Source: Rebecca billardiae RCC1528
Lineage: Eukaryota; Protista; Haptophyta
Direction of reading: 5' to 3'
Assembly: GCA_965240325.2 (NCBI GenBank)
Contig: OZ251233.1
Coordinates: 1,240,001-1,304,000 of the forward strand
DNA: 64,000 nucleotides
In this document: in pieces, positions 8,573-62,696 of the stretch
Layout of the letters: every line of letters begins with the position of its first letter
Numbering within the stretch: the stretch's first letter is position 1
Notes under the pieces: model-generated
Seen by the model: the letters and a program-made list of their open reading frames with translations, nothing else
Told to the model about the DNA's origin: nothing
Database searches by the model: none
Program-made: the position numbers and the translations under genes

Positions 8573-8577
<5 letters not shown>

Positions 8578-11297: not shown

Positions 11298-11303
11298 TAA
11301 CGC

Positions 11304-22465: not shown

Positions 22466-22954
<489 letters not shown>

Positions 22955-22963
22955 AAATATATA

Positions 22964-28544: not shown

Positions 28545-30359
28545 CTAGTGTCGTTTTTTGCTGCTGGCAATCTGCTTCAGCATCTCACGCACCCTGTGCA
28601 GTGCGCGTTCGTCAAATCCCAGAGATGCATTGCAACATGTAGCCTGGAAGCTCTGGTAGTCGAAGGCCTCAGCTGGATCAACGTATGGCAACCTGCGAGC
28701 GGCACCAGGGGGAATGCAGGACTCGTCTTGCACAGAATGATGAGTCTTCACGGTCTTGCCCCTGGTCCTGGAGAAGACTGATTTCATGGCGCACGGTGTC
28801 CAGAGCATGGTGCGACGTCCCAGCTTCGAAGCACATGCGCTTTCTTTCGGGCCATTGTCAATGGCCATTTGGACCATGGGTGAAGATACTTCGATCACCT
28901 GCTCTTGCGAGGTTTTTGAGCCAACAAGCACATCAGAAGTCCAGGCAGCGTGCCAGTTGCGAAAGCGGTTGGTGTCGATTGCCACGGTCACACTCGACCC
29001 CAGGCGCTCAAAGGCAGGGCAACAGAGCTGGTCCTCGGTCTCTCGAGTCACCACAATCTCAAGTTGGCATCCATGGCCAGCCACAGTCGCATTCATCCAC
29101 TCAAAGAGGCTTAGGAAGGCCACCTCCGGCAGTGACTTCCCGCTCCCTGCTCCACCTCGCATGTGCACAAAGGCAGACACCCTGCCCTGGCCACTTGCCT
29201 CCATGGCAGGGTTAAGGCCCCATGGGGAGAGGATTGGCACCAGCGCACGCATGCTGCCATACCACTCACTGAACCGGCCAGCGCCTGCACACGTGAGTTC
29301 TTTCTCAGGCAGGACGTCCTCGCCCTTTCTCGACTGGTGATCCACCCACCTGTCAAGTTGACCCAGCACCGGCCCTTGCCCTTGGAGCACGTTGTTGTGG
29401 CGGTGAGTGAGCTGCGCTCGAGCCAGTGCACTGCCCTGGAGGATGGACTTGACTGAGAAGCTCGTCTTCGTCAGGTTTTGCACACCGCACACCTCCTCCA
29501 CCTCCTCCAAGCATGATTGAAACCGCAGCCTGCCATCCAGGACCTCCGGGTAAAAGTCTCGCACGAAGCGCAGGATCCGTGGGTAGCCTAGGACGTGCAC
29601 ACGCCCGTATGGCATGTGGCTTGAAACATGGTCTGCAACGAAGTCGAGCATGGCATGCTCCTGCTTCAAGAGGGCGGATGGCGAGTTAAAGATCGGCGTA
29701 GTGAGGTTGAGGAATGTCTGGTTGCAAAAGCCAGGAGCCAGGACCACACGCCGCCGCTCCACCTCAGCCAGAGCTGCGAGCTCGACCCCCACCCAGTCAG
29801 CGTGCTGCGGACAGCGGAGGCGCAGATGCGCACCCTCAGAGCAGCTGCTCGCACGATGGACGTACTTGAGCAGACGGCCTACTGCCATCGCGCTCTCAGG
29901 CGGAAGGACATGGAATAGGCCGTCGGCTCCTCTGTTGGTGCCAAGTGCAGTCGTCGTGTTGGGTAGACCTGCTGTGTCGACGATGACCGCACTGCTCGTG
30001 TGAGACGCCAGTGCACGCAGGTCAAGTGAACCCTGGATGGAGCACGTGCCATTGCGGGTCACGAGGGAGAGGGCGGAAAGCGCGTAGGGTTCATGGTCGC
30101 GTCGAACGTAGGGGTACTTGTTCGTTTTCTCAAACACGCCGGGCAAAATCGGATGCACTCTGTTCTGGTCCTTGTCGGAGCGAGTCGGCGGCCGCTGTCG
30201 TTGGCGCTGAGAGCGCGGCAGCCCTTGTCGCTGCTGTGACCGCTGAGACGGCAAGTGCAGACGAATGCTCGCAGGCGCCTCGGCTATGTCACCAGCCGGG
30301 TCGCGGCGAGCCTGAATGAGCACAGCGCCAAGCATCGCGACGCACAGCCATCGAGACAT
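28545..30359 (-). CDS. Second intact copy of the 1436-3292 gene
   Basis: 604 aa, near-identical, with in-frame indels only. 3' flank homology extends to ~28346. Confidence 0.75.
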   Translation of the reverse strand: MSRWLCVAMLGAVLIQARRDPAGDIAEAPASIRLHLPSQRSQQRQGLPRSQRQRQRPPTRSDKDQNRVHPILPGVFEKTNKYPYVRRDHEPYALSALSLVTRNGTCSIQGSLDLRALASHTSSAVIVDTAGLPNTTTALGTNRGADGLFHVLPPESAMAVGRLLKYVHRASSCSEGAHLRLRCPQHADWVGVELAALAEVERRRVVLAPGFCNQTFLNLTTPIFNSPSALLKQEHAMLDFVADHVSSHMPYGRVHVLGYPRILRFVRDFYPEVLDGRLRFQSCLEEVEEVCGVQNLTKTSFSVKSILQGSALARAQLTHRHNNVLQGQGPVLGQLDRWVDHQSRKGEDVLPEKELTCAGAGRFSEWYGSMRALVPILSPWGLNPAMEASGQGRVSAFVHMRGGAGSGKSLPEVAFLSLFEWMNATVAGHGCQLEIVVTRETEDQLCCPAFERLGSSVTVAIDTNRFRNWHAAWTSDVLVGSKTSQEQVIEVSSPMVQMAIDNGPKESACASKLGRRTMLWTPCAMKSVFSRTRGKTVKTHHSVQDESCIPPGAARRLPYVDPAEAFDYQSFQATCCNASLGFDERALHRVREMLKQIASSKKRH

Positions 30360-30559
30360 TTCTTCTGCTTATGGGGGTACTGCAAGCAAGGGGGTTTGCA
30401 AGGGCGTTCCCGCAGGATCCTGCCACACGCTCCCCCCCCAGGGTGTGCCCGAGGTACAACCCAGCGGCTATGTACCATTTAGACGACTTTGTTCCACTAC
30501 CATGTGCCCCACGGACGCCACGAGGTCCACGACGGGGCCGCCGACGGCATGCTTCAACT

Positions 30560-31745: not shown

Positions 31746-33494
31746 ATGAGCGAGCCACTGTCGCCATCGCCCGGGTCCGAAAAACGAAGCAGTCCGAAAA
31801 GCGAAGCAGCGACCTGTAGTCACCTTCGTCCTCGCGCGCAGAACGGCACGCGCCTCGACGCCTCCGCCGCCCGACGCTCCGCCGCGACGCGTCGTCGGAG
31901 CTGCTGGCGCGCGATGCTGGGGCGGCGCGCATGGGTTGCCGTCGTGCTTGCGCTGCGCGTCAGTCGGGGCGCGCCGGAGCCCGCGCCGCCGTCGCTCGGC
32001 GGCGCGAGCGGCGGCGCGAGCGGCTGTGCGAGCGGTGGCGCGCCGGCCGGCGAGCGCCACCCGACGTACCGCGTGGCGGTGGTGCTGCCGTGGCTGGGCA
32101 AGAACGTACCGTCGTACATGCAGCACACGCTGTCGTCGTGCGCCACCTCCGAGTACCTCTTCGACTTCTTCGTCTTCCACGAGTCCCACCCGAAGCTCGC
32201 GCGCATGCGCGTGCCGCCCAACGTGCAGCTCGTCGACCTCGGCCAAGACGGGCTCGCGCGGCAGGTGGCGACCGCGCTGGCGGCGGAAGAGGGGCTGCCG
32301 CCGACCGAGGGGGCGGCCGTGCTCCGGCACATGACGGCCATCTTCCGCAAGGTGCCGTACATGGTCGTCGAGTACAAGCCCGCGTACGGCGTCGTGTTTG
32401 CGCGCTGGCTACAGCCGTACACCCACTGGGCGTTTTCGGACACGGACGTGGTCTACGGCGATCTGCCGCTGTTCGTCACGGCGTCGGAGCTGGCGGAGTA
32501 CGACCTGGTGACGTACACGTACGGCGACCACTGGAGCCTCTTCCTCCGCGGGCAGCTCACGCTCCACCGCAACGCGCACGCCGTGAACACCGTGTACAGG
32601 GCGTGCGAGTTTGTGGGCCCGGGGCTGAGGTCTGAGCTGGTGCGCAAGCTGGAGGAGCTGGGCGCGATCGGCGCGGCGGCGGCGGCGGCGAGGCGCGGGG
32701 GGCGGAAGGTGCGGAAGCAGCGCAAGCCCGCGTTCAACCCGACCGACGAGGGCTGCTACTCCGCCGCCGCGCTCAGCCACCGGCCGCACCTGCGGATCAA
32801 GTGGCGGTACACGTTCTGGACAGACCTCAATGCCTCCGGCCCCTTTGCGCTGGTGGGCGGCTCGCTCCGCCACTGCCCGAGCGACGGCGGGCAGGGCGCG
32901 GGGCGGCGGCGCGGGGCATGCGAGCTCGGGCCCGGCGCGGACCGGGACGACTCGCCCGCCGCCGCGGCCGAGCTCCGCCACTCCGCCGGACTGCCCGGAC
33001 TTTTCGAGCCCGCGGGCGAGTGGGTGCCGGTGGCGCGCGCGCCCAACACGAGCTGCACCGCGTGGGTGAAGCAGCTCGAGTGGCGCGTGTGCACGGGCCT
33101 CGGCGGCGCGCACCTCGGCGGCGCGATGGGCGAGGAGGTGGCGTACACCGACGGCGTGCTCCGCGTGCGCGCCGCCGCGTGGCGCACGCCCGACCGGCGG
33201 TACGACCACGCCGGCATGCTGCACATGCACATGGGCAAGCGCACGAGGCGCATCTTTGCCAGCGCGCCGCCGCGCGCGCCGCGCGCCGAGCCGCCGGCCG
33301 AGCGCGCGCCGCCGCCGCGCGGGCCGACGCTCGTCGTGCTCGACCCGGCGTCCGGCCGCTCGCCCAGAGGCGGGCCGCTCCTCCCGCGCCCGCGGCAGGA
33401 GCCGCGGACCGAGGCGGAGTGGCGCGCGCTCGTCGACGACGCGTGCGCGTCGCGCTTTGGCGGCGAGCGCGTCGTTCCCGTCGCGTGCGGATGA
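31746..33494 (+). CDS. DUF6625-like putative GT-A glycosyltransferase, secreted or type II (likely start ATG 31914)
   Basis: VVLPWLGK..PSYM...SC, PPNV, EYKPAYGVVF, YTHWAFSDTDVVYGDL (DxD) and GQLTLHRN follow the DUF6625 pattern. Signal or anchor AWVAVVLAL. Confidence 0.8.
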   Translation: MSEPLSPSPGSEKRSSPKSEAATCSHLRPRAQNGTRLDASAARRSAATRRRSCWRAMLGRRAWVAVVLALRVSRGAPEPAPPSLGGASGGASGCASGGAPAGERHPTYRVAVVLPWLGKNVPSYMQHTLSSCATSEYLFDFFVFHESHPKLARMRVPPNVQLVDLGQDGLARQVATALAAEEGLPPTEGAAVLRHMTAIFRKVPYMVVEYKPAYGVVFARWLQPYTHWAFSDTDVVYGDLPLFVTASELAEYDLVTYTYGDHWSLFLRGQLTLHRNAHAVNTVYRACEFVGPGLRSELVRKLEELGAIGAAAAAARRGGRKVRKQRKPAFNPTDEGCYSAAALSHRPHLRIKWRYTFWTDLNASGPFALVGGSLRHCPSDGGQGAGRRRGACELGPGADRDDSPAAAAELRHSAGLPGLFEPAGEWVPVARAPNTSCTAWVKQLEWRVCTGLGGAHLGGAMGEEVAYTDGVLRVRAAAWRTPDRRYDHAGMLHMHMGKRTRRIFASAPPRAPRAEPPAERAPPPRGPTLVVLDPASGRSPRGGPLLPRPRQEPRTEAEWRALVDDACASRFGGERVVPVACG

Positions 33495-35346: not shown

Positions 35347-38240
35347 ATGCTGAAGATGAACCTGCCGCGCTTCGAGCTGCGCGGCCGTTGGTCCACGGAG
35401 CGCCAGTCTGGCTCGCCCAAGATCGTGCGGTCCTCCGACCTCGAGCCCATCCGCGAGCCTCCGCCGCCGACGCGCCCGGTGCTCGTTCTCGTCGAGCAGG
35501 TGGAGGGCGGTTCCAAGCTCGGGCGCGCGGCGTTCGGCGTGCTGCTCGACGAGCTGCGCGCGCTCGGGCTCCGCATCACGGAGCTCGATGCGTCGCGCAA
35601 GTGGTACGCCGTCCACGCGCCCTTCTCCCTCCTCCTCGCCGAGGCCGAGCGCATCCGCCTCACCAAGCCCGCGCTCGACGCGTCGATCGGCCAGATCAAG
35701 GTGTCGGCCGCGGCGCTGCACCTGCTCGCCTCGGGCGACCGGCCGGCGTCGCTCTTCTCGCCGGCGGAGCTGGTGCTGCTGCACTCGAGCCTGCTCCACC
35801 GCCCCGCGATGCGCGCCGAACACCTCGCCGACGGCGGCGCGCTGCCCGCGCGCCGCTCGATGCACGAGCGCGCGGTGTGCTCGCAAGGCAGCTCGCTCTT
35901 CGGCGCGTGCGAGGCGCTGGGCGCGGCGACGGTGATCGCCCCGCACGAGCCCGAGAAGCTCAAGTCGCTCGAGACGATGTGGCTCCGCCCCCGCCGCGCG
36001 TGGCTCGCCGACGGCTACCTCGACGCGCTCGTGTGGCAGCCCCGCGCGCGCATAGAGAACTACTATGGCCCGACCGAGGTGAGCAGAGGGCCAGGGCCCC
36101 GGCCGTGCGCGGCGCAGCGTGTTCGCGCGCGCGCGTCACGCCCGCGCGTGCTCTGCGTGTCGCGCGCGCGTGGGCGCGGGTGGAGCAAGGGGCTGCGTGG
36201 TGGTGGTGGGGGGTGGCGCGTGCACGCGTCAGGGGGCGCCGGGGTCCGGTGCACGGGCGGTGCGCGTGCACTCGCCCCGGGGGCCCCTTGGCAGCGCTCA
36301 GCTGGCTGACGCGCCCCTCCACCGCCTGCTCCCGCGCGGCGCTGCGCTGCGGCTGCCGCGCGCGGCTGCCCCCGCCGCCGCCGGGACACGCGCGCGCGGC
36401 CCGGCGGGCGCAGACGGCGTTCTACTTTGAGTTCATAGCGCACCTCACGCGCGGCCTCGTCGCGCCCGCGCTCGGCTCGGTGTGCGTCGTGCTGTGCTAC
36501 ATGGTGCTCCCGCGCGCGCTGCCGTCGGCCGAGGCCGCGGAGCGCGCACAGCACGCGCTCACGGCCGCGTACGCCGTCTGCCTCGTGCTGTGGGCGGCGT
36601 GGTGCGTGGAGGCGTGGAAGCGGCGCGAGGCGCGCTGCGCGCTCGACTGGGGCACGCTCGCGCTCGTCGACGCCGAGCTCGACGGCGCGCCGCGCGTCGG
36701 CTTCCGCGGCACTCTGCGCGTCTTCTCCCCGCTTACGCGTCAGAACGAGTGGTGCTTCCCGCCGCAGCGGCGCGCGCTGCGCTACGCGCTCACCGTGCCC
36801 GCGACGCTGACGTGCCTCGCCGTGGTGGGCGCGGACATGTACGTGTGGCTGTGGGCGTACTACGCCGCCGTGCGCCGCTGGTCGGGGGGCACGCTGCTGG
36901 AGACCGCGCTGCAGCAGCTCCCGACCGCCGGGTACTGCCTCTCGGTCGCGGCGCTCTCGGCGCTGTACCGGCCGGTCGCGGCCGCGCTCACCGAGTACGA
37001 GAACTACCGGACGTCGGAGGCGCACCGGAACGCGCTGATCGTGAAGCGGGTGCTGTTCGAGATGGCGAACAACTTCTCGACGCTCTACTACATCGCCTTC
37101 TGCAACCGCGACCTCGCCGAGCTGCGTTCGTACCTGCTGCAGCTGCTGGTCGTGTTTCAGATCATCTTCCAGCTGATCGAGAGCGCGGGGCCGGCGCTCG
37201 GCCGCGCGCTCGGCAGGCTGCTCGGCCGGCGGAAGCGGCGCGAGGCGGCGGCGTCGAGGCTGCGCGCCGCCGCGGCGGCGTCGGCGCCGAGCAGCCCTAC
37301 CCTCGGCGCGGACGCCGCCTCCGCCGCCGAGCGCGCCGCGCTCCTCGCCGACGTGGAGACGCAGCTCGAGCTGCCGCCGTACGACCCGTTCGACGACTTT
37401 GTCGAGCTGGCGGTGCAGTTCGGGAACGTGCTGCTCTTCGCGGCGGTGCTGCCGATCGCGCCGGTGTTCGCGCTGGCGAACAACCTGCCCGAGATCCGCG
37501 CGGACGCGCTCAAGCTGATGCGCTCGCACCGCCGCCCGGCGCACGCGGACGGCGCGCGCCAGGTGCACGGCATCGGCGCGTGGCTCGTGGCGTTCCAGGT
37601 GATCACCGGCTGCGCGGCGCTCACCAACCTGGCGCTCCTCACGTACATCTACGGCTGGCTCGAGCACCTCGAGCCGTCGGGCCGGCTGGTCGTGTTCCTC
37701 TCGGGGCAGCAGCTCGTGCTCGGCGCGATGGCCGTGCTCGCACTGCTCGCGCCCAAGCTGCCGCACGACGTGGCCGTGCGCGTCGCCGTCGCCGTCGATG
37801 CGACCGAGCGCTCGCTCCGTGAGATCGCCGCGCCGCTCGCGACGCGGCTGCGGCACCACCACCGCGCGGCGAGCCGGATCCAGGCGGCGGTGCGCGCGGC
37901 GCTGGCGCGCCGGCTGATCAAGCGGTGCAACGCCGCCGCGCTCACCATCCAGGCCACCGCGCGCGACTTCCTCGGCCGCTCGCGCCGCGAGCGCTTGATG
38001 CGGCGCAGCTTCAACAGGTCGCTCGCGCGCGCGACGAACGTCGCGCGGCTGCGGCGCACCTGCCACGGCGCCGCGCTGCACGCGATCGTCGTGGGCTGCG
38101 TCGGCGTGCTGCTCGCGCTGGTGCTCCGCGGCGCGTGGTCGGACAGCGCCGGCGCGCTCTACCCACCCGAGCCCGCTCCGACCGGGCTCTTCGAGCAGCT
38201 GCGCGCGCTGCTGGGCGGGCACAACGGCCGGCGCTCATGA
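35347..38240 (+). CDS. ANO: Anoctamin/TMEM16 family protein (ANO8/10-like) with C-terminal IQ motifs; exons 35347-36078 and 36414-38240
   Basis: Splicing GAG|GTGAGC...GCGCAG|ACG gives IENYYGPTETAFYF. Further motifs are ENYRT, LIVKRVLFEMANNFSTLYYIAF, DDFVELAVQFG..LF, ALANNLPEIRADALKL, RRP and IGAW. Confidence 0.93.
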
Positions 38241-48612: not shown

Positions 48613-49397
48613 CGTCGGAAGCGTGAGTAGCAGCAGCGGCTCGGGCACATCGGGCGACGACGAGAGCAGCGACCCCGACGGCGCAGCTGTGGACAACCCA
48701 ACGGTCGACGGCTCGGCGGTTGGGGCGGCCAACCGCCCAGTTGTCATCGGTGTGGGCGTGGCGGTGGCCTCTGTCGTGCTCTTGCTGCTGTGCGTTGGCA
48801 CGTACGTGCTGGTCGGCAAGTCTGTGTGCTTGGTGCGTGCCCGCGTGCCCGCGTGCCGACACCGCGCGGACGTCGGCGCGCGCGCTGCCACGCTCGCGCG
48901 CGCTCGCTCCCATCAACCACGCTCGCCTGAACCCCGCGCACGCCCGCGCACGCTTGGCGCCTCCGCAGGCGAGCAAGAAGGAGGATCTTGCGGCCGTGCA
49001 GACCCAGGCCCCTGTGCGCGGTCACCAACCGAACCAGGGCTCTGACAGTACATCGTCGGCGGACTACACGAGACCCTCGTTGCTCGAGGCCATGGCGAAC
49101 TCGCTGCTCGGAAAGGGTGGCGCGCGGCCGCAGCAGCCGCCACCGGCGCCGCCGGGGCCCGAGCAGCCGTCGAGCAGCCGCGAGACGCCACCGCAGCCGT
49201 CACTCTTCGACGGTGTGGCGGATGCCTTCATCGCGCCCTTCCGCTTTGTCTCCAGTGGCGGCGGCGCGAGCAGCTCGACGGCTGGCACGGCTGCGCGCTC
49301 CTATGCGGCGCCGTACGGCGGTGCTGGCGACATGAACACGACCATGGCGTCGCGCGGTGGCGCCCGCACGCCGAGCGGCGCTGGCGCTGCTGTGTAT
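39502..49397 (+). CDS. Giant (~3002 aa) type I cell-surface protein; exons 39502-39665, 39790-39997, 40291-40486, 40678-40743, 40887-48832 and 48969-49394 plus stop
   Basis: All five introns are GT-AG and keep the frame. Order of domains: signal peptide, RTX-like repeats (GSGGDDIFYGG, GGAGDDTFHGG, GEDGNDEF, GGDGDDYL, GGPGYDHI), Pro/Ser stalk, 11+13 GCT-x-A-x-NY-x-DDGSC repeats, second Pro stalk, TM helix (VVIGVGVAVASVVLLLLCVGTYVLV) and cytoplasmic tail. Confidence 0.88.
41160..43975 (+). repeat. Coding minisatellite with a 57-bp unit (PPPPSPAPPPPSSAPPPPT/A) and a 420-bp higher-order period
   Basis: Unit spacing 41173 to 41230. Sequence from 41281, 41701 and 42121 repeats in register. Less regular Pro-rich sequence continues to ~45420 and again at 48001-48612. 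Confidence 0.92.
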
Positions 49398-49399
49398 AA

Positions 49400-49668
49400 G
49401 GGACCAGGCCCGCCTCGCGGCGGACTCGGCCCGCGGTCCGGCGGCAGCCGCGGGGGCGGCGGCCGGGTGACAGTAGCGGCGGAGCGCCCGACTGCTATTC
49501 CTCCTTCCGCGCGACGCTCCGGCTACGCGGCTAAGGTAGCGATGGGCCTGCCGACCCCCCTCTTTGCCAGTCGCCCCGACTCTGCCCGCAACCCGCGCTA
49601 TCTAACGAGGGTCGCAGTTGATCAGCAAGGGGACTGGCTGAGGGGCGGCGGCTCCCGGCCACCGTCGC
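49400..49668 (-). repeat. Split direct repeat B2
   Basis: Matches 50187-50466 except for two small indels. Confidence 0.93.
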
Positions 49669-49721
49669 CACAACCGGAACAAGCCATGCCCACCACAGTC
49701 GAGCCGGGTGGGAGGGCAGGG

Positions 49722-50181
49722 TGCGAAATCAGTAGCGACGCCACCGCCCGCACCCGAGGAGGAATAAGCCGACGGCCCGCTCGCAGCCGACGAGGGTTGC
49801 GCCCGCCCTTAGCCGAGGAGTCGCCACCGAGCGGGGTACGGTCGGTGGACCGAAGTGCTGCTGAACAGCTGGGGCTATCAGCCCAGGCCCCGCCCTGCCT
49901 CGGCTGCCGAAGAGCAGGCCTGCCGCGGCCCGCATCGGCGGCGCTCAGAGGTAGAATCTACCGGTTCGGTACAGGCGGGACCGGCTGCCCGTATACAGCC
50001 CGCCCAGGAATCATACCGCTTCGCTGGGCGCGCACCCGACGCCCGGAGCTTGCTGCCCGCCCAGGCACGGTCCGGTCAGCCGCCCTAGCAGGTCAGCAGC
50101 GGTTAGCAGCATTGAGGAGCAGCCGATCATGGCGGCGGGCTGGCCCAGTTATACCCCTATAACCGAACGGTTATAGAACAA
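49722..50181 (-). repeat. Split direct repeat A2 (460 bp)
   Basis: Appears identical by eye to 54737-55196. Confidence 0.95.
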
Positions 50182-50186
50182 TAACT

Positions 50187-50466
50187 GGGACCAGGCCCGC
50201 CTCGCGGCGGACTCGGCCCGCGGTCCGGCGGCAGCCGCGGGGGCGGCGGCCGGGTGACAGTAGCGGCGGAGCGCCCGACTGCTATTCCTCCTTCCGCGCG
50301 ACGCTCCGGCTACGCGGCTAAGGTAGCGATGGGCCTGCCGACCCCCCTCTTTGCCAGTCCGCGCCCCGACTCTGCCCGCAACGGCGCAACCCGCGCTATC
50401 TAACGAGGGTCGCAGTTGATCAGCAAGGGGACTGGCTGAGGGGCGGCGGCTCCCGGCCACCGTCGC
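50187..50466 (-). repeat. Split direct repeat B1
   Basis: Matches 49400-49668. Confidence 0.93.
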
Positions 50467-50644
50467 GTAGAAGGGTGCCACACTTCGGAGAGGTGGAGGC
50501 CCGGTGGCCCGGGGGCCGGTGGCTCGAGGCCGTCCGGGCCGCCGCCGCAGAGGGGAAGGGTGGGAGTCTGCCCGGTCTGCCGTGGTGAAGGCAGCGACGA
50601 AAGACGCCTGCCGCTGAGCGACGAGATCGCAAGAAGCGACAGCA

Positions 50645-50985
50645 CGCGATGTGCATATCGACCGCTGAGAGAATAAGGGATGGCAAGCAAGCGATGTGCA
50701 CATTGCAGACCGAAGATGAGACTGCAAGCAAGCGATGTGCACATCGCTGAAAGGTGAGACTGCAAGGAAAGCGATGTGCATATCGCTGAAAGATGAGATT
50801 GCAAGCAAGCGATGTGCATATCGCTGAAAGATGAGATTGCAAGCAAGCGATGTGCATATCGCTGAAAGATGAGATTGCAAGCAAGCGATGTGCATATCGC
50901 TGAAAGATGAGATTGCAAGCAAGCGATGTGCATATCGCTGATGGAAGATGAGATTGCAGGAAAGCGATGCGCGGATCGCTGAACG
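50645..50985. repeat. Tandem array of about 8-9 38-bp units, each with an 18-bp palindrome
   Basis: Unit GCAAGCAAGCGATGTGCATATCGCTGAAAGATGAGATT starts at 50683, 50724, 50762, 50801, 50839, 50877, 50915 and 50956, with degenerate edges. Confidence 0.95.
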
Positions 50986-51043
50986 AAGAAGGGGGAGATG
51001 GCCGGGGGCGAGCCTGCGCGCCGAGCGGCGAGAACGCCCGGCG

Positions 51044-52801
51044 TCAAAGGGCCAGCGCCGCTTCGCCCGCCAACCGAGGCTCGGCCGCGAGCGAGCAGAG
51101 CTCGAGCCACATGTCAGCCGACGTCTCCCGGCGCCGGCTGAGGGCGTCGGCGAGGCGGTTGCGAGCACCGGGTAGATGGCAGCACCAGAGCGTGATCGCG
51201 TGCTCCGCCACCAGCAGCGAGAGGCGCTGCAGGAGGCCATTGAGCAGCGCCGAGCCCGGCACACGCCACCGGCGCAGCCACCCGAGGGCCACCTTGCTGT
51301 CCGTGAAAAGGCGAACGTGGCAGCCCGCCAAGTACGGCGCCCACTCGATGGCAGCATGGAGGAGCATGTACAGCTCCATGTCTGCGATGTGCCTCAGCTC
51401 GCCCGACACGCGCAGCGACGCCAAGTCCTTGCGCAGCGCCCAGCCGTTGGAGCAGGCGGCGCCGCCGCCCGCCGCCTCCCAGGCGGCGTCGGTAGCAATC
51501 ACCGGCGCGCCCACCGCCAGGCCCACCGGGCGGAACAGCCGCCGCCAGCCGGCACCCCGCTCGAGGAGCGCGGCGAAGAATGCGCACTCGCTGGGCAGCG
51601 CGGCGCCGAGCTGGGTCGAGAGACGGCCCTGCGCAAACGCCGACGGCGTGTGCGCGAGATCGACGAAGGGGCGAAGGAAGGCCCGGCACGACGGCTGGAT
51701 CGTAGCCGCCCAGCCGAGGCAGCCAATGAGCTTCTGCAGCTCACGCTCGGAGGGCCGCGATGCCCGCAGCTCGGAGAGGAGCGCGGCGTACCGCGCGCGC
51801 TTCTCTGCCGGCAGCGAGACGGCATCGTTGGCGACGTCGACGTCAAAGCCCAGGACCACGGCGCGCTTGGCGGGCGCCACGAGCTTGCCCGGCTTGTCGG
51901 CCGGGTCGAGGCCCATGGCGGTCAGCGTGGCGCACAGCCGCTCGAACGCCGCCTCGAGATCGGCCTTGCGATCGCCCCACCCGAAGAAATCGTCGATGTA
52001 CGAACCGAGGCTGAACGAGAGGAGGCCGGACCAACGCGCGACGAAGGCGTCGCGAACGGCGTCGGACAGGCGCACAAACCAGTAAGGAGAGGATGCGAGA
52101 CCGAAGGGAAGAGATGTGAAGAAGTAGTAGAACCCGCGCCAGAACACGCAGAGCAGGCTGTAGTCCTCCGGACGTACGGCCATCCGCGTGTACGCGCGCG
52201 CGATGTCCACCTTGAACACGTAAGAGTCAGGCGTGAGGGAAGACAGCATGCGGTCGATGTGCTCGAAGGAGAAGGAAGGGGCGTGCACCCGCGGGTTCAC
52301 GCCCGAGGCGGTCATGTCGACGATGAGGCGCCTGTCGGCGCCCTCATCTTTGGGCACCGAGCCCAGCGGGGACACGACCATGCGCGCGCGCGGGAAGGGG
52401 CGGTGCTGGAACGGGCCAGCCAAAACGCCGAGAGAGACGTACTCCGCGATGCGAGCGTCGACAAACTCGGGGAAAGCGCGCGCTGAAGGATGATTGGGAC
52501 GGAATGCGGCAGACGGCTGGCCGGCGAAGAGCACGTCGACGCCGTCGCGCAGCTCGCGCGACAGGTCGACGCCCGCGCCGCCCAGCAGGAACGCAGACAC
52601 TTGCTGGAAACGAAGTTGGAGCGCGGTCGGCGCGACTGGCAGCCTGGCGGCGAGGCCAGCCAGCATGCGCGAGCGCTGGCACATCTCGGCGGCTGTGATC
52701 GGCGGGCAGGTCACTGTAGGGGCCGCACCGGCAGCCCACGACACCGGCAGGTCGAGCGCATCGACGCCGGCGTTCTCGCCACCCGCCGCCGCCGCCGCCC
52801 C
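51044..52801 (-). CDS. pol: DIRS-type reverse transcriptase-RNase H
   Basis: SPLGSVPK, RRLIVDM, KVDIARAY, LPFGLASSP, YIDDF and LGF (RT). TDA, HIADMEL, TDS and HLPGARNRLADALSR (DIRS RNase H). The frame is open from directly after the gag TAG. Confidence 0.95.
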   Translation of the reverse strand, partial: GAAAAAGGENAGVDALDLPVSWAAGAAPTVTCPPITAAEMCQRSRMLAGLAARLPVAPTALQLRFQQVSAFLLGGAGVDLSRELRDGVDVLFAGQPSAAFRPNHPSARAFPEFVDARIAEYVSLGVLAGPFQHRPFPRARMVVSPLGSVPKDEGADRRLIVDMTASGVNPRVHAPSFSFEHIDRMLSSLTPDSYVFKVDIARAYTRMAVRPEDYSLLCVFWRGFYYFFTSLPFGLASSPYWFVRLSDAVRDAFVARWSGLLSFSLGSYIDDFFGWGDRKADLEAAFERLCATLTAMGLDPADKPGKLVAPAKRAVVLGFDVDVANDAVSLPAEKRARYAALLSELRASRPSERELQKLIGCLGWAATIQPSCRAFLRPFVDLAHTPSAFAQGRLSTQLGAALPSECAFFAALLERGAGWRRLFRPVGLAVGAPVIATDAAWEAAGGGAACSNGWALRKDLASLRVSGELRHIADMELYMLLHAAIEWAPYLAGCHVRLFTDSKVALGWLRRWRVPGSALLNGLLQRLSLLVAEHAITLWCCHLPGARNRLADALSRRRETSADMWLELCSLAAEPRLAGEAALAL

Positions 52802-54734
52802 CTAGATGCGGCCCACCGCCGCCGGCCAGCCGTCGCCGGACAGCCCCACCGCGTGGGCCCCCGCGAGGTGATCGGGCGACGCGCAAATGGCACACCGCGG
52901 CGCGTGGAACTCGTCGAACTCGCCGGGGCCAAACGCCGTGCCGCCGCGGCCGATCGGGCATGACGCGAAGGTGCAGCGCTCGCCAGTGAGCTGGAAGCGC
53001 TGGCAGGCGCGCGCCGCGTTCGCCTGCGCCTTGGTGAGCAGCGGTGCGCCCCCCGCGCCCACAAACTTCTGCAGCGACGGCGGGACGTAGTGGTCAGGCC
53101 GCGCGGTGCGCGGCGCGAAGCCCCCACCGCCGCCGGGCGGGAGCGCCCCGCCCCCGCCCCCCGCCGCTTCGAGCGCCGCGCCGCCGGCCCCACCCAGCTC
53201 GGCGGGTGCGAGGCGAGGCCGCTGCGACGCCGCCCCCGCGTCGCGATCGCCCGCCGGCGCCGACCGCTTCAGCATAGGAGCGGCCGCGACCGCGGCGTTG
53301 GCCGCGCGCAGCGACGCCGACACCGCTTGCGCCGCCGTCAGCTCGGCGTTGAGCGCGCGCGCCTCGGCCGACTCGCTGTCGCGCAGGAAGAGGATCGATG
53401 ACGCGCGGCCCGAGCGCCGCTCCTCCGCCGCGGCGGCAACGAACGATTTGTTCACCACCGAGAGGAGGGACTCGGCGGGCATCAGGCCGCGCAGCTGCTC
53501 GAGCCACGACGAGAACTCGAGCGCCTCGGCCCGCATGGCCGGCGACCAATGAGAGGCTGGGGAGGGGTCATCTGGCGAGGCGGCCGGGATAAACGTCGTC
53601 GTGAGGCAGCCCAGCAGCGCCTCGAGGGACTGGAAGGGCTGGTCCTTCGGCTGCACCCCGCCGAGGAGACGCCCCCCGCGAGAGAACTCGCGAGCGAAGC
53701 GCTCCCCCAGGCCTGGAAATGCCCGTCGTGAGGCAGCCCAGCAGCGCCTCGAGGGACTGGAAGGGCTGGTCCTTCGGCTGCACCCCGCCGAGGAGACGCC
53801 CCCCGCGAGAGAACTCGCGAGCGAAGCGCTCCCCCAGGCCTGGAAATGCCTGGACCATATCGCGCAGGTTGTAGCTCGTGCAGAGCTGGCCAGACGAGTC
53901 GCGCACCACGAGCGCGCGGGGCGCGTCACGCGCCGGGTCCGCGACCACCCGGCGCGCCGGGCCGGCCCCCGACGACGCCCCCGCCTGCTCCGACATCGCC
54001 TGCATGAGCGCCGCCACCGACTGGGCCGAGAACCCGAGCCCGGCGGCGTGAGCGGGCAGCGCGGCGGTAGAGGCAGGGCCAGCAGCGCCCCCCGGCGCGC
54101 GGTCGGCCGCCGCCGCCGCCGTCCCCGCCGGTAGCGCGGTAAGGCCGGGGGCGAGCGCGTGCGCCGCGAGGCCCGCAAGCAACGACGACGGCGCGGCCGC
54201 CGCCGCCGCGCCCGCCGCGTCCAGCGCGACCGAAACCCCGGGAGCAGCAGAAGCAGCCGCTCCGAGCGTGGGTGCGAGGCTGGGGAGCAGCGGATCCGAG
54301 GAGGCAGGCGGAGGCATCGCCGCCGCGGCCGCCGCTGGGACCGAGGTGGGCGGGCGGGGCAGCGCGGCCGGGACGGTAGGCGTCGGGGCGAGCAGGGCCG
54401 GCGCCGCCGGGGCGAGCCCCGCCGCCCCCGCCGGGACCAACGCGGCGAGCTGGGCCAGCAACGGCGACAGCTGCGCCAGCTGCGCGGTGAGCTGCGCCGC
54501 GACGCCGGCGCTGAGCGGGATCCCCTCCACCGGGTGCGCCGGCGGGACCAGCGCGGCACTCGCCGCTAGCGGGGCACTCACCGACGGGGCCGCCGGCGCC
54601 GCCGACGCGGGCACGGGCCCTTGAGCGTCTTGAGCACCGCCGCGACCCGTGGCCGGGCCCTGTCGCTCGCGAGTGCGGCCGCCGCGGAGGGCCACCAGGC
54701 GCCCCAGCGAGAGCGCAGCCGAAATGCAGATCAT
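52802..54734 (-). pseudogene. gag: Gag-like ORF1, frameshifted by a 127-bp tandem duplication
   Basis: Ala/Pro-rich N-terminus and a C-terminal Cys/His cluster (CQRF..C....C...H...CAIC....H....H). Removing one unit of 53597-53723/53724-53850 gives a single 601-aa ORF. Confidence 0.85.
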
Positions 54735-54736
54735 GA

Positions 54737-55196
54737 TGCGAAATCAGTAGCGACGCCACCGCCCGCACCCGAGGAGGAATAAGCCGACGGCCCGCTCGCA
54801 GCCGACGAGGGTTGCGCCCGCCCTTAGCCGAGGAGTCGCCACCGAGCGGGGTACGGTCGGTGGACCGAAGTGCTGCTGAACAGCTGGGGCTATCAGCCCA
54901 GGCCCCGCCCTGCCTCGGCTGCCGAAGAGCAGGCCTGCCGCGGCCCGCATCGGCGGCGCTCAGAGGTAGAATCTACCGGTTCGGTACAGGCGGGACCGGC
55001 TGCCCGTATACAGCCCGCCCAGGAATCATACCGCTTCGCTGGGCGCGCACCCGACGCCCGGAGCTTGCTGCCCGCCCAGGCACGGTCCGGTCAGCCGCCC
55101 TAGCAGGTCAGCAGCGGTTAGCAGCATTGAGGAGCAGCCGATCATGGCGGCGGGCTGGCCCAGTTATACCCCTATAACCGAACGGTTATAGAACAA
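54737..55196 (-). repeat. Split direct repeat A1 (5' end of the element)
   Basis: Matches 49722-50181 and contains the hairpin CTATAACCG-AA-CGGTTATAG. Confidence 0.95.
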
Positions 55197-55499
55197 GAAC
55201 TTTGCATCGTCATCATCATCTCTTCCTATCGGCCGCGCATGCAATCGAGCCGCTACCGCGGCTCTTCATCATCATTATTGGCAATGGCGCGAGGAAGTCA
55301 GCGCGACGAGGCCTATATCATCGCGTAGTTGTCGACGCGCGTCCCCGATATACCGCGGTTCGGGGACTACCGACTGGAACGCGCTAGATCGAAGAGGCGG
55401 CACTTACTGTATAGCCGACTGTCAACAATCACGATCCGCGTGCGCGATGCCAGCGTCTAAACTCATCGTCATCAGCCGACGTACGCCGCGCCGTCGCCT

Positions 55500-56508
55500 T
55501 CACTCAGCGTGCTGCCGGCGCAGCCAGTGGAGCTGCTGCTGCCGGTGCGCGTGCAGCGGGATGCTCGTCAGCTCGCGCAGCTCCTCGGGCGAGCGGTAGA
55601 TCGAGATGAGCAGCCGGTACGCCAGCCACTCGATCTCGAGGTTGCCCTCCTGCCGCGCGGCGTAGATGTAGTGGCACAGCCCGAGCAGCAGCTCGTTGTG
55701 TTCGCACTCCTCGAACCGCAAATACGTGAACACCGAGTTGACCTGCGCGCGCAGCAGCGAGCCGACCGAGAGGACGAACGTGATGTAGATGCCGGACATG
55801 CCCATGTGCGAGAGCAGCGCGAGGATGCCGCTGGGCATCACCTTGCCCGAGAGCGCGAGCGTCGTGGGCTCGCGCCCCTGCGCGCCCGTGAGCGACCAGT
55901 ACCCCTCGGCGGAAAGCGACAGATAGCACGGCACCGAGCGCACCAGCAGCTCTGCCGGAGGGGTCTCCGCCTCGCCCGGCGGCGCGAGCGCGTCCGGAGG
56001 CGGCAGCGCGCCGGGGAGCGCGCTCGCGGGCCACGGCAGCACGAGCGCCGAGGTGCTGGCCGACGGCAGGAAGAGCGCCGGCGGGAGGCACGACGCCACG
56101 CGCGCGCCCGCCGACGTGGGCGCACCCGCGTGCGCGCGCGGCGCGGCGCGCTCGTCATCCACGTCCGCGGCATGGCGCGCGCGCGCGTCGCGCCGCTTGG
56201 CGTGCGCGCCGCCTGCGGTGCTCGCGGTGCCGCCCGTCGGGCCGGCGCCCCCCTCGAACGCCACGAGCTGCTGCAGCAGCACCGCCTTCGCCGCCTCGTC
56301 CAGCGGCCAGCGGTGCGCGAACTCGGACACGCGGCCGCCCGCCATCCGGTCCTCCGCAGGTGTCCGCATCGCGCTCACGTCCCAGCCGGAGCTCGCGGCG
56401 CTCGCGCCGGGCGGCAGGTGCATGAGGGTGAGCTCGACGTGGAGGACGACGGGGGAGCACTCCGCGCCGGGCGGCGAGAGCTCCGCGTCGGCGCTCGGCT
56501 CGTCGTGC

Positions 56509-56544
<36 letters not shown>

Positions 56545-59500
56545 TCCGGCGTCGCGTCGGGGTCGCGGCTGTCTGGGCCGCCGCCGGCCGGGTCGCCCGC
56601 GTCGCCGCCGCTGTCGGCGCCGTCGGCGCCCGCGCCGGCGGCCGAGCCCGCGGCGGGCGCGGTGGCGTCCGGCTCGCCGCCGCCGCCGCGGTGTCGGCGC
56701 TCGCGCAGGCCGCGGCGCTCGCGCGCGCCGCGCGCGTGCGCGCGCGCCGCGCGCCGTTGGCGCGCGCCCAGCTCGGGTGCTAGCCCGAGGGATGTGCAGT
56801 TGAGCGACTGCGCGAGGAGGAGCCGCTCGGGCGGGCTCGCGTCCCAGAACGTGGCCGCGTGCCGCGCGAACACCAGCCGCTGCAGCTGCCCCGCCGAGAA
56901 GTCGTGCTCGAGCGCCGAGCCGCCCGCCTGCTCGAGCGCGGCCACGTCGAGCGCCGTCGCCTCGGCCACGCGCAGCGCGACCCCTTGGTAGATTGCGTGC
57001 GAGCGCGAGCCGTCGGTGAGCCACACGCGCACGGTGGCGGAGGCGAGCGGCTGCAGCACCAGCGCCACGTTCGCGTCCGAGAAGAGGTACAGCGGCCCGA
57101 AGATGAGCACGAGCAGCAGGCCGAAGAGCACGAAGCCCTGCGTGGCCTTGGCCACCCAGCCGACGGGAGCGCCGTGCTGCAGCCGCGCGGGCCGCCACAG
57201 CCGCCACTCGCACGCCGCGGTGAACAGGGCGCCGTGCAGCGCCTCGAGCTTCTGCCAGTCGCGGAAGTAGAGCGAGGTGCGCGTCGCCGCCCAGTCCGAG
57301 AGCAGCCGCAGCTCGTACGCGAACGGCGTCGCCCTGTACACGAGGTAGAGCCAGTACCGAGACGGGGTCTGGCTGCGAGTGAGCCACTCGCCCTTGTAAT
57401 CGCCAACGGCCGGCTCGCCTTTGTAAAGCGGGTAGCCCTCGGCGAGCTGCCGGCCGGAGAGGAGGAGGTAGGCCCCCTTGAGCGCGTACGCGACCACGCT
57501 GAACAGCGACGGCTCCGCCCAGTGCCGCAGCGCCACCGCGTGCAGCGTGAGCCACGTGAGTAGGTGATGGGTATACTTGGGTAGCAGCGAGCGGCCCGCG
57601 GCGCTGCGCACATAAATGAGCCGATCTGTCACCATGAACGAGAGCTGCAGGAGCAGCGCCCAGAGGTACTCCGCGGGGAAGAGCCGGCCGGACAGCCCCT
57701 CGCGCGCCGCCGAGCCCACCAGATCGATCCCGCCGCCCGGCCCGAACAGCCCCGGCGCGCGCGCGTCCGCGGGCCGGCCGCGCGCCGCCGCGTGCGGCGC
57801 CGCGGGCATCGCGACCGTGAGCCAGAGCAATAGCACCAGGTCGGTCGCGACGAGCGGCATGTAGAGGTCGCAGCCGGGCAGCTTGGACGAGTTGTCGAGC
57901 ACGGCGCCAAAGTAGGCGCGCGGGAACGCGGCGGCGCGCGCCGCCGACGCGCGCGCCGCGCGCAGCCAGCGCGGGCTGCGCCGCGGCCGCGCCCGGCGCG
58001 CGGCGGCCGCCGCCGTGCCGCCGGCGCCGGCGGATCGGCTGACGACGCCTGGCGACGCGCCGCCGCCGCCGCTGCCGCTCGCGCCGCTCGCAGCCGAGCT
58101 GCCGGTCTGGGAGCGCCCGCCCAGCGCGCTCAGCTCCATCAGCCCGGCCACGCCGCCGCCCGCGCGCTCCGCCGGCAGAGGCGGCGGCCGAGCGCAGGAG
58201 CCCGCGGCGCGCGCGCGCGCGAGCGCGGCCGCGCGCTCGAGCGCGGACGCGGACGGCGAGAGACCGGCGCCCCTGTGCACGCGCGCCGCGTGGGCGGCGG
58301 ATGGCGGCGAGGCGGCGCGCGCCGCCGCGCCGCGCCGCCTGCGCGCGCCGCCGCCGCCGGCCTCGGACGGCGAGTCCGGCGCCGCATCGGCCACGGTCCA
58401 GTACCCGTGTGTCACGAGCGTGTAACGATGCAGGTACAAACACAGCAGCAGAAGCAGCCATGGCCACGCGGCGAGCGGCGGCGAGCCGAGGAGGGCGCTC
58501 AGCGCGGCGTCGGCCGCGCGCGCGGCGGATGCGGCGCCGTCGGCATCGGGCGCGCCGCGCGCGCACGCCCAGAGCGTGCTGACGGCGGTGGCGGCGGGCG
58601 AGGGCGGCGGCGCCATCGCCGCCACCGCCACCGCCGCGCCGTCGGCCGCGCGCTCCGCCGCGGCCGCGCGCTCCGCCGCGGCCGCGCGCGCCGCCCAGCG
58701 CGCCGCGGTCGCGAGCAGCCACTGCGCGCGCGTGAGCAGCAGACACAGCGTGCAGTACAGGTTGAGTGCCTGCCACAGCGCGCGCGGCGGCCGCGGCGCC
58801 TCGAGCGCGGCGACGCACGCCGCGAGCAGGCTCGGCGGCAGCGCGAGCAGCTGCGCGCGCGCGCCGCGCGCCACAGCCATCGGCAGCAGAGCCGAGCCGA
58901 GCGCCAGCGAGCGCGTCCACTCGAACTCGAGCGCGGCGCGCCACAGCGCGCCCAGGTACCGGGAGATGGCGCGCGTGAGGCCGCGGCCCCTGTACGCGCG
59001 CGCGAGCCGCGCCACCGCGCGCGAGGCCGCGCCGAGCTCTGCCGCAGCGTCCTGCTGCACGTGCGTGCGCGCGCCCGCGAAGAGGGGAGGCGGCGGCGGG
59101 CGCGCGCGCCGGCGCTGCGCGTCGCGCGCGCCCGGCCCGCCGCCGTCGCGCGCGCCGCCCTCGCTCGCAGCACCGCCGGCGCCGTCGGCGCCGGCCCCTG
59201 CCAGCCCGTCCGCGCCGCCGTGCCCACCACCACCCTCATCGCCGCCGTCGTCGCCGCCGTCGCCGTCGTCCGCAGCGCCGTCGTCCGCACCGTCTGGGAT
59301 GGGGACACACATGGCCGCCAGCCGTACACGCAGGTACGCGCGGCGCGCCGCAGGGTCGAGCAGCTGCAGCGCGCCCTCGTCCGCCTCCGCCGCCCCGGGG
59401 CCATCCGACGGTGGCCCCGCCGCCGTCGCCGCCGCCGCCGCCGTCGCGCTCAACGGCGGCCCCGCCGCCGGCCCCGCCGCCGCCGCCGCCATCGCTGCTG

Positions 59501-60585
59501 GCTGCTCAGAGCTCAAGCTGAGGCGCTCCGTGCGATCGGCGTCGGCGGCGCCGCCCGCTGCGGCGCGCGCGGGCGATGCGAGCGCGGGCGCGCAGCTCGG
59601 GATCGGCGCGTCGGTGCTTGAGCACGTGGCGACGTGCACCTCCGCTCGCGGCCTCGGCGCGCGCGCGCGGTCTGCGCGGCCGGCTCGATCCACGCCGCCG
59701 CCCGCACCGCCACCGCCGCCCACACCGCCGCCGCCGACGTCGGCGGCGGCGCCACCGCCGCCATAGCCCGCGCCGGCGACGACGCCCGACGCGACGAGGT
59801 CCCGGCCCAGCCGCTCGATGCGCGTCGAGCGCTCCCGCTGCGCCTGCAGCGCCGCATCAATCCGAGCGGCGCGCGTCGTCGCCTCGTCCCTCAGCCTGCG
59901 CGCCAGCGCGTCGGCGCGCGCGTGCCGCGCGCGCGCGTGCCGCCGTCGCAGCACAGCGTATGCGTCCGAGTTGAAGGCGTGCGCGTGGGCGAGGATCGCG
60001 CCGCAGAGGAGCGCGTGCGCGAGCACGGGCCAGCCGAGCCGCGCCGACTCCTCCGGCGACGGCGGCGCGAACGGTATGAACCGAGCCAGGCGGCCGAGCG
60101 CCGCTGCTGAGAGCGCGCACGGCGCCGACGCCGCCTGAGGCACCGGCAGGGACGGCGGCGGCGACGGCGGCGGCGGCGGCGCGAGCGACGGGGGCCACCA
60201 GGCCGCCGACGCCGGGTATGCTGGGTGCGGCGGCGGTGCAGGCGGCAGCACGCCGCTGCCGCCGCCGTCGCCGCCCGCGCCCGTGAGCCACGCGTGCTGC
60301 GCCCGCGCCGTGCTCACCAGCCCGTCGAGCGCCAGCGCCCCCGGGGACAGGGCGACGCATGCCCACGCGGCCAGGGGCGCCCACGCCGCGGCGGCGGAGG
60401 TGCTGGGCGCGGCGTGCAGCAGCACGGGGCTTGAGTGCCACAGCGCGAGCGCGTACGCCAGCGCGCTCGCGTCCAGCCAGTCCGCCCGCCGCCACGCCAG
60501 CCACATCGCGCCCACCGCGGTCAGCGGTAGCGCGAACGTGCGCCACAGCGCGCGCACGCGCCGCAGACCGTCCTCGCCGCCGTCA

Positions 60586-60629
<44 letters not shown>

Positions 60630-60737
60630 GGCGGTCGCGGCCGGGTCCGCCGCGGTGGGCGGCGCTGCGGCGTGGAGAGGCGGGCGTGGCTTCGACGGCG
60701 CTGCCGGTCGCGGCGGCGCCGACGGCCGCTGAGCCAT

Positions 60738-60784
<47 letters not shown>

Positions 60785-62696
60785 GCGGCTGCTGCTGCAG
60801 CAGCTGCTGCAGCCGCGAGCTGCGCCGACGCGCCGCCGCCGCCGTCACGGCAGGGAGCGAGCTCATGGTGCGCGGCCACTCGTAGAAGCGCGGGCGGTGC
60901 ACCCAGCGCCAGCGCGCCTGCACGTACGCCGCCGCCCTGCCCTCCGCCGCCGCGTGCGCCCGCTCGTCCGCGAAGCCGTCGCCCGGCGCGCGCCGCGTGC
61001 GCGCCTCGAGCCGAGCGCGCGCGTGCGCACACGCAATCACGACCCTGAGCGCGAGAATGTCAGCAAGGGCGAGCGCGAGGGCGTCGGCCCAGAGCGCGGT
61101 GTGCACCCACTCGGCGGTGGGCGCGGCGCCGAGCCGCGCCGGCGGGATCGGCGCAGACACGCCCAGCGCCCACGCCACCAGCGGCGCGCGCATCCACGAC
61201 GTTTCCGCGATCCCGCCGGAAGCTTCCGGAAGGCCGCCGCGCGCGCCCTCTGCGCACGCGACAGCAGTGAGCACGGCCGTGCCGACGCGGAGCAGCCAGC
61301 GGAGCAGCGCGCCGCCGCCCACGAGCGCGCCGAGCGCGTGCGCCGCGCGCGAGCCCCACCGCCGCGTCGGCAGCGCCAGCCCCGCGATCGTCAGCGCGTC
61401 GACCAGCGCGCCGGCCGACGCGGCGCGCTGCACAAGGGCGCGCAGGCAAAGCGCGCTCGCGCACAGCGCGCGCGGCACCGTGCGCGCCATCGCGTCGGTC
61501 GCGACGAGCGTGCGCGCCTCGACGAGCCAGCCCAGCCCCCACGGCCCGTCGAGCGGCGCCGCGCCGCGCGCCACGCCGCCCTCGCCCCACGGGCGGCCGC
61601 CGCTGCCGCCGCCGTCCGCGGGCCGCAGCGAGCGCAGTGCGAGCACGCACGCGCACGCGCACACGAGCGCCGCCTCGGCCGCCCACGCGCGCCGCCACGG
61701 CGCGTCGCCGCGCGCGGCGCTGGCCAGCGCGCCGAGCGCGAGCGCGCACACCCAGCGCCACCCGCGCGCGCTCGACACCGGCAGCGCGAGCGCGAGCGCG
61801 CCGGCGAGCGCGTAGCCGCAGCCAAAGGCGCCGCGCGCGCCCATTGCTCCGAGCGCGCGACTCAGCTTGCGAAGTGCGGCCGACGCGGCGGCGGCGCGCG
61901 GCGTGGGGCCGAGCACGGCGGAGGGCGGGAGCGGCCGTGCGAGCTCGTCCAGCGCGACGCTGAGCGCCGGCCCCGCCCGCACCGCGCCGCAGCTCACGAG
62001 CGCGAGCCCGCAGCCGAACAGGCAGAGCCCGCGCGCGGCGCGCATGCGCGCGACCAAGCGCGCTGTGCCGTACGCGGCGCGCGCGGCGCGCGAGGCGCAG
62101 GCCGCGCACGCCTCCGCGCGGAGGGCGGCGAGCGCCATCGGCGTGTCCGGCGGCCCGTCGTGCGCCGGCTCGTCCACCGCGTCGTACCAGCGCGCGCGCG
62201 CTCGCCAGCGGCGCGGCGCGGCGGACGGCGCGAGCGCGAGCGCGACGCTGCCGAGCACCGCGGTTGCGGCGGGGGCGGCGAGCGGCGCGCACAGCCGGAC
62301 GGAGGCCGGCGCGAGGGCCTCGGCGGCGGACATCGCGAGGCTCGTCGCGGCGACGGCGAGGAGCATCCCGAGGCTCGCGCGCCGCAGCAGCAAGAGCGCG
62401 CGCCACGCGTGCGCCGCCGCCGCCAGCATGGTGGCCGCCCACAGCGCGAGCACGATGCTGCGCACCGCGGCGCTGTGCGCGCACGCCGCCGCGACGGGCG
62501 AGAGGAGTAGCACGACGGCCGCGTGCAGCGCTGCGGTCGCCGGCTTGTCCTCCGCGCACAGCAATGCGCGCGCTCGTCCTCCACACACGGCAATGCGCGC
62601 GGCCGCGCGTGCCGACTCCATCGTTGCGAGCGCAGCCACAATGTTGCACGCGCTACCGTAGGCCGTAGCCGGTCCTCGCGCCCGGCCGGGCGGCAT
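55500..62696 (-). CDS. PIEZO: Piezo-family mechanosensitive channel
   Basis: C-terminal Piezo signatures DRLIY, YRATPFAYELR..DW..T.TSL...WQKLE, IFGPLYLFS, GIYITFVLSVG, LC..IY.AR and LISIYRSPE, with many TM segments. The start may be ATG 62621. In-frame introns cannot be excluded. Confidence 0.92.

Follow-up and report, generated by a model that had tools for sequence, protein, structure and literature searches.

Whether a retroelement of the DIRS order can persist without a recombinase of its own is the question raised by a Ngaro-like element in a 64-kb stretch of DNA from Rebecca billardiae RCC1528 (contig OZ251233.1, positions 1,240,001 to 1,304,000 of the forward strand), hereafter called the window, whose own numbering is used throughout. 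The recombinase is what defines elements of the DIRS order, and in the standard model a circular junction is restored from an internal copy and the circle is inserted by the tyrosine recombinase (YR) (PMC7192593, PMC8547959). The window element carries a gag-like open reading frame (ORF), an uninterrupted reverse transcriptase (RT)-RNase H and split direct repeats, and no YR could be found in it. The explanation that we consider most likely, with a confidence that falls a little short of even, is that it is an integration-defective Ngaro-like element which would be competent for reverse transcription and would be mobilised by a YR acting in trans. In the papers searched, no variant is described that has gag and RT but lacks a YR.

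Self-BLAST and a repeat search, in which the region from 48.5 to 56.5 kb was compared with the whole window, delimit an element of 5,802 bp on the minus strand, running from 55201 to 49400, with all of its coding capacity on that strand. Read in this direction, it consists of A1, the 5' split direct repeat (54737-55201), a 4,270-bp internal region, B1, the internal copy of the 3' repeat (50187-50466), which abuts A2, the internal copy of the 5' repeat (49722-50186), a 53-bp spacer (49669-49721) and the terminal 3' repeat B2 (49400-49668). The two A copies are each 465 bp long and 99.8% identical, their sole mismatch lying at element base 5 (C versus A), and the two B copies (280 bp for B1, 269 bp for B2) differ by two indels, of 8 bp and 3 bp, and are otherwise the same. 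The same searches show that the terminal repeats are direct only, with neither inverted terminal repeats nor an internal complementary region, and no target-site duplication (TSD) is common to both flanks, which share only an offset 4-nt TTAT/TTCT microhomology. A model in which a core was duplicated at the insertion site was rejected as a misfit with the observed right junction. An Rfam scan of the window gave no match.

Ngaro-like elements are distinguished by split direct repeats and the lack of a methyltransferase domain (PMC13465315), and the split direct repeats, the RT-RNase H and the absent methyltransferase domain identify the window element as Ngaro-like within the DIRS order; it is called Ngaro-like, and not a full member, because the defining recombinase is absent. 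A long terminal repeat (LTR) retrotransposon was rejected, as there are no two whole LTRs, no TSD and no DDE integrase. The original prediction for this locus had read the architecture as A1-gag-pol-B1-A2-B2 without a TSD, and both points are borne out by the self-BLAST and by the flanks, with the strand now known to be minus and the ends lying within 3-5 bp of those first proposed. Its A repeats, given as 460 bp and identical, were nearly right, apart from the one mismatch, and of its assignment to a Ngaro/PAT type the Ngaro part stands on the missing methyltransferase domain, the absence of which removes the PAT part in spite of the split repeats. It had made no mention of the 53-bp spacer or the non-identity of B1 and B2, nor of a 127-bp frameshifting duplication and a 38-bp tandem array described below.

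The coding content was established by searching the two ORFs separately. ORF1 (52802-54734) begins with an ATG at 54734, 2 nt past A1, and ends at a TAG (52804-52802); Ala and Pro abound in its N-terminal half, and toward its C terminus lies a Cys/His motif that is kept in the metagenomic relatives L006 and L007 (BLASTP E 1e-9 and 8e-4). Neither Pfam nor PDB profile searches detected an enzyme domain in ORF1 and no family was matched, and its position and conserved Cys/His motif are compatible with gag. An AlphaFold model of its C-terminal 372 residues was too poor for use (pLDDT 39). In the window copy a perfect tandem duplication of 127 bp (53597-53723 and 53724-53850; Tandem Repeats Finder (TRF) period 127, 2.0 copies, 100% match) causes a frameshift that leaves ORF1 divided between two frames. 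ORF2 (51044-52801), on the other hand, is uninterrupted, as had been predicted, and is open directly past the gag stop, with its first ATG at 52666 (540 amino acids) and its stop at 51046-51044. In Pfam it hits RVT_1 (E 2.5e-8), with a weak match to RT_RNaseH besides; an exhaustive HMMER search returned 9,519 pol relatives at E<=0.001, and alignment with relatives shows that it keeps the catalytic residues, namely YIDD and the D/E/D/D columns of RNase H, together with the terminal ADALSR motif. Pol ends about 30 residues past ADALSR, with no methyltransferase or other domain after it.

Gag and pol lie in one frame with a lone TAG between them, after which comes GGG or GGA, in the window element (TAG plus GGG, 52799-52804, a candidate read-through site) and its read-assembly counterpart L001, in L003/L006 and in L007. 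This is unlike L008, a YR-encoding Ngaro-like element in which gag and pol occupy different frames. The single in-frame TAG-GGR suggests that a Gag-Pol protein would be made by UAG read-through, much as in gammaretroviruses, where a lone UAG, with GG(A/G) after it, interrupts the common frame of gag and pol. Unlike in those viruses, no conserved downstream pseudoknot could be made out, and the element is neither an LTR retroelement nor a retrovirus; the RNA downstream of the gag TAG forms stable hairpins, yet these are no stabler than those of shuffled GC-rich sequence. Because the gag-TAG-GGR-pol arrangement is kept in three lineages and the Cys/His motif of ORF1 is conserved, the family of the window element appears to be functional now or to have been so recently.

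The interval from the pol stop to B1, where relatives have ORF3, measures 577 bp (about 580 bp had been predicted) and comprises 54 bp, about 350 bp of 38-bp repeats that fill most of it (50641-50989; about 8-9 copies, TRF period 38, 7.7 copies, 91% match) and a unique stretch of 174 bp (50467-50640). Each 38-bp unit holds a 16-18-nt palindrome, and the 3' untranslated RNA of the element would carry about eight tandem hairpins. No YR was detected by Pfam in any element ORF of about 150 amino acids or more on either strand. Pfam is weak on YRs of the Ngaro type: the matches of the fusion proteins P0048 and P0104 fall below cutoff, and the YR ORFs of L008 have no Pfam record. A YR profile was built from the C-terminal tails, carrying R, HxxR and Y, of four RT-RNase H-YR fusion proteins among the pol relatives, and it was run over all six frames of the 64-kb window, cut into stop-to-stop pieces of at least 25 amino acids. 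Its best score was at the level of chance (E 0.77), and the same profile, as a positive control, recovers the L008 YR, which overlaps the pol end (E 1e-47 and 1e-13). Likewise, tblastn with all of the YR tails and the L008 YR returned nothing in the window, and neither the profile nor tblastn gave a match in the unique 174 bp. The claim that no ORF encodes a YR has therefore withstood Pfam, tblastn and the six-frame profile search that the original prediction itself proposed. As far as its sequence can tell, the 577-bp interval is too short and too repetitive to encode a YR of about 300 amino acids, and the absence of a YR from the element and its neighbourhood is as well established as sequence analysis allows. 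A duplicated 1.9-kb low-GC gene was considered as a YR-only partner and rejected for its secreted-looking product and lack of a YR signal. This direct duplication (1395-3295 and 28505-30392, 96.8% identity) lies in low-GC islands, and its products of 604 and 618 amino acids have a signal-peptide-like start and N-glycosylation motifs, with no Pfam or PDB match.

The terminal sequences nevertheless resemble those of YR-encoding elements. A near-perfect palindrome of 68 nt has in its left arm the B1|A2 junction, which is the presumed circle junction (50134-50201; DNA fold -25.7 kcal/mol, z -5.5, with none of 200 shuffles folding equally well). The first 50 nt or so of A1 correspond to the inner hairpin and right arm of this palindrome, and the one A1/A2 mismatch falls in its left arm, where the base of A2 is paired and that of A1 is not. 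In L008, too, the junction is spanned by a palindrome (z -3.3), the left arm of which holds the split point, and the window element thus looks as if it keeps the apparent cis site of a YR element. L008 itself (5019-12059 of a 3.2-Mb ENA contig with 48% GC) is a complete canonical Ngaro-like element in the order A1, 35-bp tandem array, ORF1, pol, overlapping YR, B1A2, 118-bp spacer and B2; its pol has one in-frame stop and is 32% identical to the window pol, and a 10-bp core, with one mismatch, is present at both of its ends.

A piece-by-piece comparison of the window with read assemblies shows how far the window copy represents its family. Records of the exact pol and gag proteins are confined to three consecutive runs assembled in Logan (ERR14847148-50), the contigs of which (L001, L002 and L005; 3.6-3.7 kb) match the window from 54766 to 50912. 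All three lack the 127-bp duplication, which is present in the window copy only, and in L001 and L005 an intact ORF1 of 601 amino acids is followed by pol. Five transitions separate the window from the read assemblies, of which three, in ORF1, are synonymous and two, at variable positions of pol, change amino acids, the window pol having two amino-acid differences from P0001; the possibility that both pol differences are synonymous was rejected. Two of the three contigs (L001 and L002) cross the pol stop and continue, unbranched, for 132 nt into the 38-bp array. L005 (ERR14847148) ends at window position 51072, 28 nt short of the pol stop codon, which could reflect a graph branch from a variant 3' region or low coverage. 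Because ORF1 is frameshifted by the duplication and pol carries two amino-acid changes, the window copy is probably no longer a source element. The description of this copy as intact therefore holds for pol in so far as it is uninterrupted, but gag is broken and pol departs at two residues from the read-assembly version.

A tree built on 68 RT-RNase H proteins places the window pol together with P0004 (43% identity) and P0160/P0005 (41-43%) with a support of 100, whereas its identity to typical relatives is about 30-36%. The stem of this clade measures 1.2 substitutions per site and has YR-fused proteins on both sides, the RT-RNase H-YR fusions among the pol relatives including P0030 as well as P0048 and P0104. 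Because the clade is nested among YR-bearing RTs, absence of a YR within it would be a derived state and its loss secondary. A further lineage, L009, is degenerate and is placed by profile score only. In contrast to typical Ngaro relatives, the window pol thus sits in a long-branched clade of its own with three metagenomic lineages, and in all four a non-coding tandem array directly follows the pol stop, with no adjoining ORF3. The array is built of the 38-bp unit in the window, of a CCGTAT microsatellite in L003, L004 and L006, of a unit of about 17-21 bp in L007 and of GTCCA repeats in L009. Because this layout is common to the four lineages, the unusual 3' region predates the window copy.

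What lies beyond the arrays can be followed to different distances. L003, L004 and L006 end in the microsatellite 257-309 bp past pol, L007 ends 455 bp past pol, and L009 shows no YR signal in the 792 bp that follow its pol. The contig encoding P0005 (3,002 bp, JGI sample 3300045701) has an unread ORF of 315 amino acids, a typical YR size, that starts 470 bp past pol, after the array; its lack of a Pfam record is uninformative, as the YR of L008 is likewise without one. A YR may therefore well be encoded in the clade as a whole. Pfam matched no family in the non-YR tails of P0051, P0110, P0137, P0143 and P0147, scans of metagenome, viral and genome contigs for pol relatives found none, and a word-indexed search with the pol alignment did not return even P0004. 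Two further features of the relatives are recorded here. Pol of the P0004-type relative is enclosed by a perfect direct repeat of 47 bp (L006 1239-1285 and 3060-3106; L003 367-413 and 2188-2234), one copy lying between gag and the pol ATG and the other 66 bp past the pol stop. In L007 a perfect 28-bp palindrome (about 3465-3492) is found about 370 bp past the pol stop and about 140 bp past the array, and an open frame that begins with ATG comes after it where the contig ends; the palindrome could belong to a junction or could be located upstream of the unread 315-amino-acid ORF, and a scan of metagenome contigs for this palindrome gave no match.

Comparison with known systems helps to place these observations. 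Cafeteria burkhardae harbors Ngaro elements of types 1-4, of which type 2b lacks ORF1, in a genome of high GC content (PMC8547959). With these elements and with L008 the window element shares the A1-[ORFs]-B1A2B2 split repeats, a gag-like ORF1, an RT-RNase H without a methyltransferase domain and the lack of a TSD, and with L008 it further shares an internal array of tandem repeats, a spacer separating A2 from B2 and a palindrome at the B|A junction. They differ in that the Cafeteria Ngaros and L008 carry a YR as ORF3, adjoining or overlapping pol, whereas the window element carries none. DIRS-1 and PAT-like elements have an RT-RNase H of the same order and, in the standard model, a circular junction made from the internal copy (PMC7192593), and PAT-like elements also have split direct repeats; however, both possess a methyltransferase domain that the window element lacks, and DIRS-1 has, in addition, terminal repeats that are inverted, as well as an internal complementary region. 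TOC1 of Chlamydomonas and SIRE of Trypanosoma cruzi, on the other hand, are non-autonomous derivatives of the order, SIRE being a fragment of about 435 bp that matches the A2-B2 repeat region of VIPER (PMC9940879, PMC6681497). Like them, the window element has no recombinase, presumably depends on proteins of autonomous relatives and keeps its terminal repeat structure. A short derivative of the TOC1/SIRE type was rejected, since gag and RT-RNase H are retained. Unlike in TOC1 and SIRE, the family of the window element has preserved gag in full and an RT-RNase H that seems competent, so that integration alone would be needed from outside.

Because a YR is not encoded, trans complementation is the most economical reading of the locus. 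The element would be transcribed, Gag and the UAG read-through product Gag-Pol would then be made, and the RNA would be copied into complementary DNA (cDNA); the internal B1A2 copy would restore the ends and form the circle junction, and the circle would be inserted by a YR supplied in trans from an autonomous Ngaro-like element that resides in the same genome. Several observations weigh against it. No YR-bearing partner was seen in the 64-kb window, which holds only one RT, no second insertion site was seen, and self-BLAST found no further copies of A or B in the window. In contrast to L008, the window element has no clear short core at both ends. The five differences from the read assemblies give no sign of selection, three of them being synonymous (p 0.22), and the read-assembly version could be an allele of the window copy at one and the same locus. 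Furthermore, a single copy cannot demonstrate site-specific recombination, because any break in the BA unit of the circle would give the exact internal abutment.

The strongest rival to trans complementation, which we regard as possible but on balance unlikely, is that the window element is a dead-end remnant of an autonomous copy that lost ORF3 after insertion, through deletion or slippage linked to the array, and is immobile in its present form. Internal deletion is the commonest fate of retroelement copies. Loss of a single ORF has parallels in the ORF1-less Ngaro variants of Cafeteria (PMC8547959), only a single locus is known, and the window copy has suffered further damage in the form of the 127-bp gag duplication and the two pol substitutions; the unread YR-sized ORF past the array of the P0005 contig also fits a remnant. 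Such a deletion would, however, have to excise ORF3 neatly and leave the pol stop, B1 and junction palindrome unharmed, the same post-pol sequence occurs in the read sets, where L001 and L002 run unbranched through the pol stop, and the succession of pol stop, array and no adjoining ORF3 is common to four lineages. With one full-length copy only and the 315-amino-acid ORF of the relative unread, we could not decide between a lineage and a deletion confined to this copy.

A broader claim, to which we give a fairly low probability, is that a long-branched Ngaro-like clade of at least four lineages in high-GC microbial eukaryotes has lost the YR, shares read-through and the post-pol array, and would persist through the recombinases of other elements or through recombinase-independent integration. 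The version in which the clade is independent of any YR, its cDNA being inserted by host double-strand-break repair or recombination, perhaps with help from the palindromic junction, seems clearly improbable. It would agree with the four lineages that have no YR ORF next to pol, with the lack of a YR signal over the 792 bp of L009, with the window copy having no core shared by its ends and with the long stem of the clade, but L009 is degenerate, the L003, L004 and L006 contigs stop within the microsatellite, the unread ORF of the P0005 contig sits where a YR is expected, split repeats and a junction palindrome are typical of YR elements, and the window copy is the only complete clade element available. 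Finally, it is very improbable that a YR was missed as too divergent for profiles or as hidden by a mis-assembled 38-bp array, for although Pfam detects Ngaro-type YRs weakly, assemblies are prone to collapse tandem arrays and the ORF1 structure model is useless, the custom profile finds the YR of an element as distant in its pol as L008 and nothing here in any frame, the ORF1 homologues show a zinc-finger-like motif only, the off-frame ORFs are rich in Arg, Pro and Gly as high-GC sequence predicts, and the array and unique 174 bp together cannot encode about 300 amino acids.

The surroundings of the element add to the picture of its host. It lies 300 bp downstream of the stop of a Piezo-like channel gene (55503-62696, minus strand; uninterrupted, 2,398 amino acids; Pfam Piezo_THU9_anchor E 2e-39 and Piezo_cap E 4e-29) in the same orientation, and it may be in or next to the 3' untranslated region of that gene. 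A word-indexed protein search with the Piezo C terminus, aimed at flanking read-assembly contigs and an empty site, returned nothing, and neither did an exact look-up of Piezo. A single-ORF anoctamin gene (35388-38237, plus strand; Pfam E 9e-83) and a gene for a DUF6625 protein (31746-33491, plus strand; E 1e-21) are also intron-free. As the Piezo-like, anoctamin and DUF6625 genes all lack introns, and as GC content in 2-kb windows ranges from 53 to 87% and is mostly 60-80%, the sequence points to a GC-rich eukaryote that is intron-poor, at least in the recognised genes. The host would thus resemble Cafeteria burkhardae, another GC-rich protist, the genome of which has about 70% GC. Between about 41000 and 48900, some 8 kb of GCC/GGC-type repeats, with up to 87% GC and periods of 9, 12 and 15 bp, contain long open frames on both strands and end about 350-500 bp from B2; this tract could be a gene for a Gly-, Ala- or Pro-rich repeat protein or a minisatellite. 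Elsewhere in the window, a 226-bp inverted repeat pair (8274-8493 and 22738-22963) is 94% identical, its members lying 14 kb from each other.

The importance of the element hinges on whole-genome copy data. Were it merely a deleted copy, it would be an ordinary decayed transposon, and if the whole clade were without a YR, the obligatory role of the recombinase in split-repeat retroelements would be called into question. An element that keeps gag and RT and outsources integration only would, if this reading is true, uncouple cDNA synthesis from recombination in an order whose transposition pathway is poorly understood, and it would offer a natural system for defining the cis sites that a Ngaro recombinase requires, among which the junction palindrome is a candidate.

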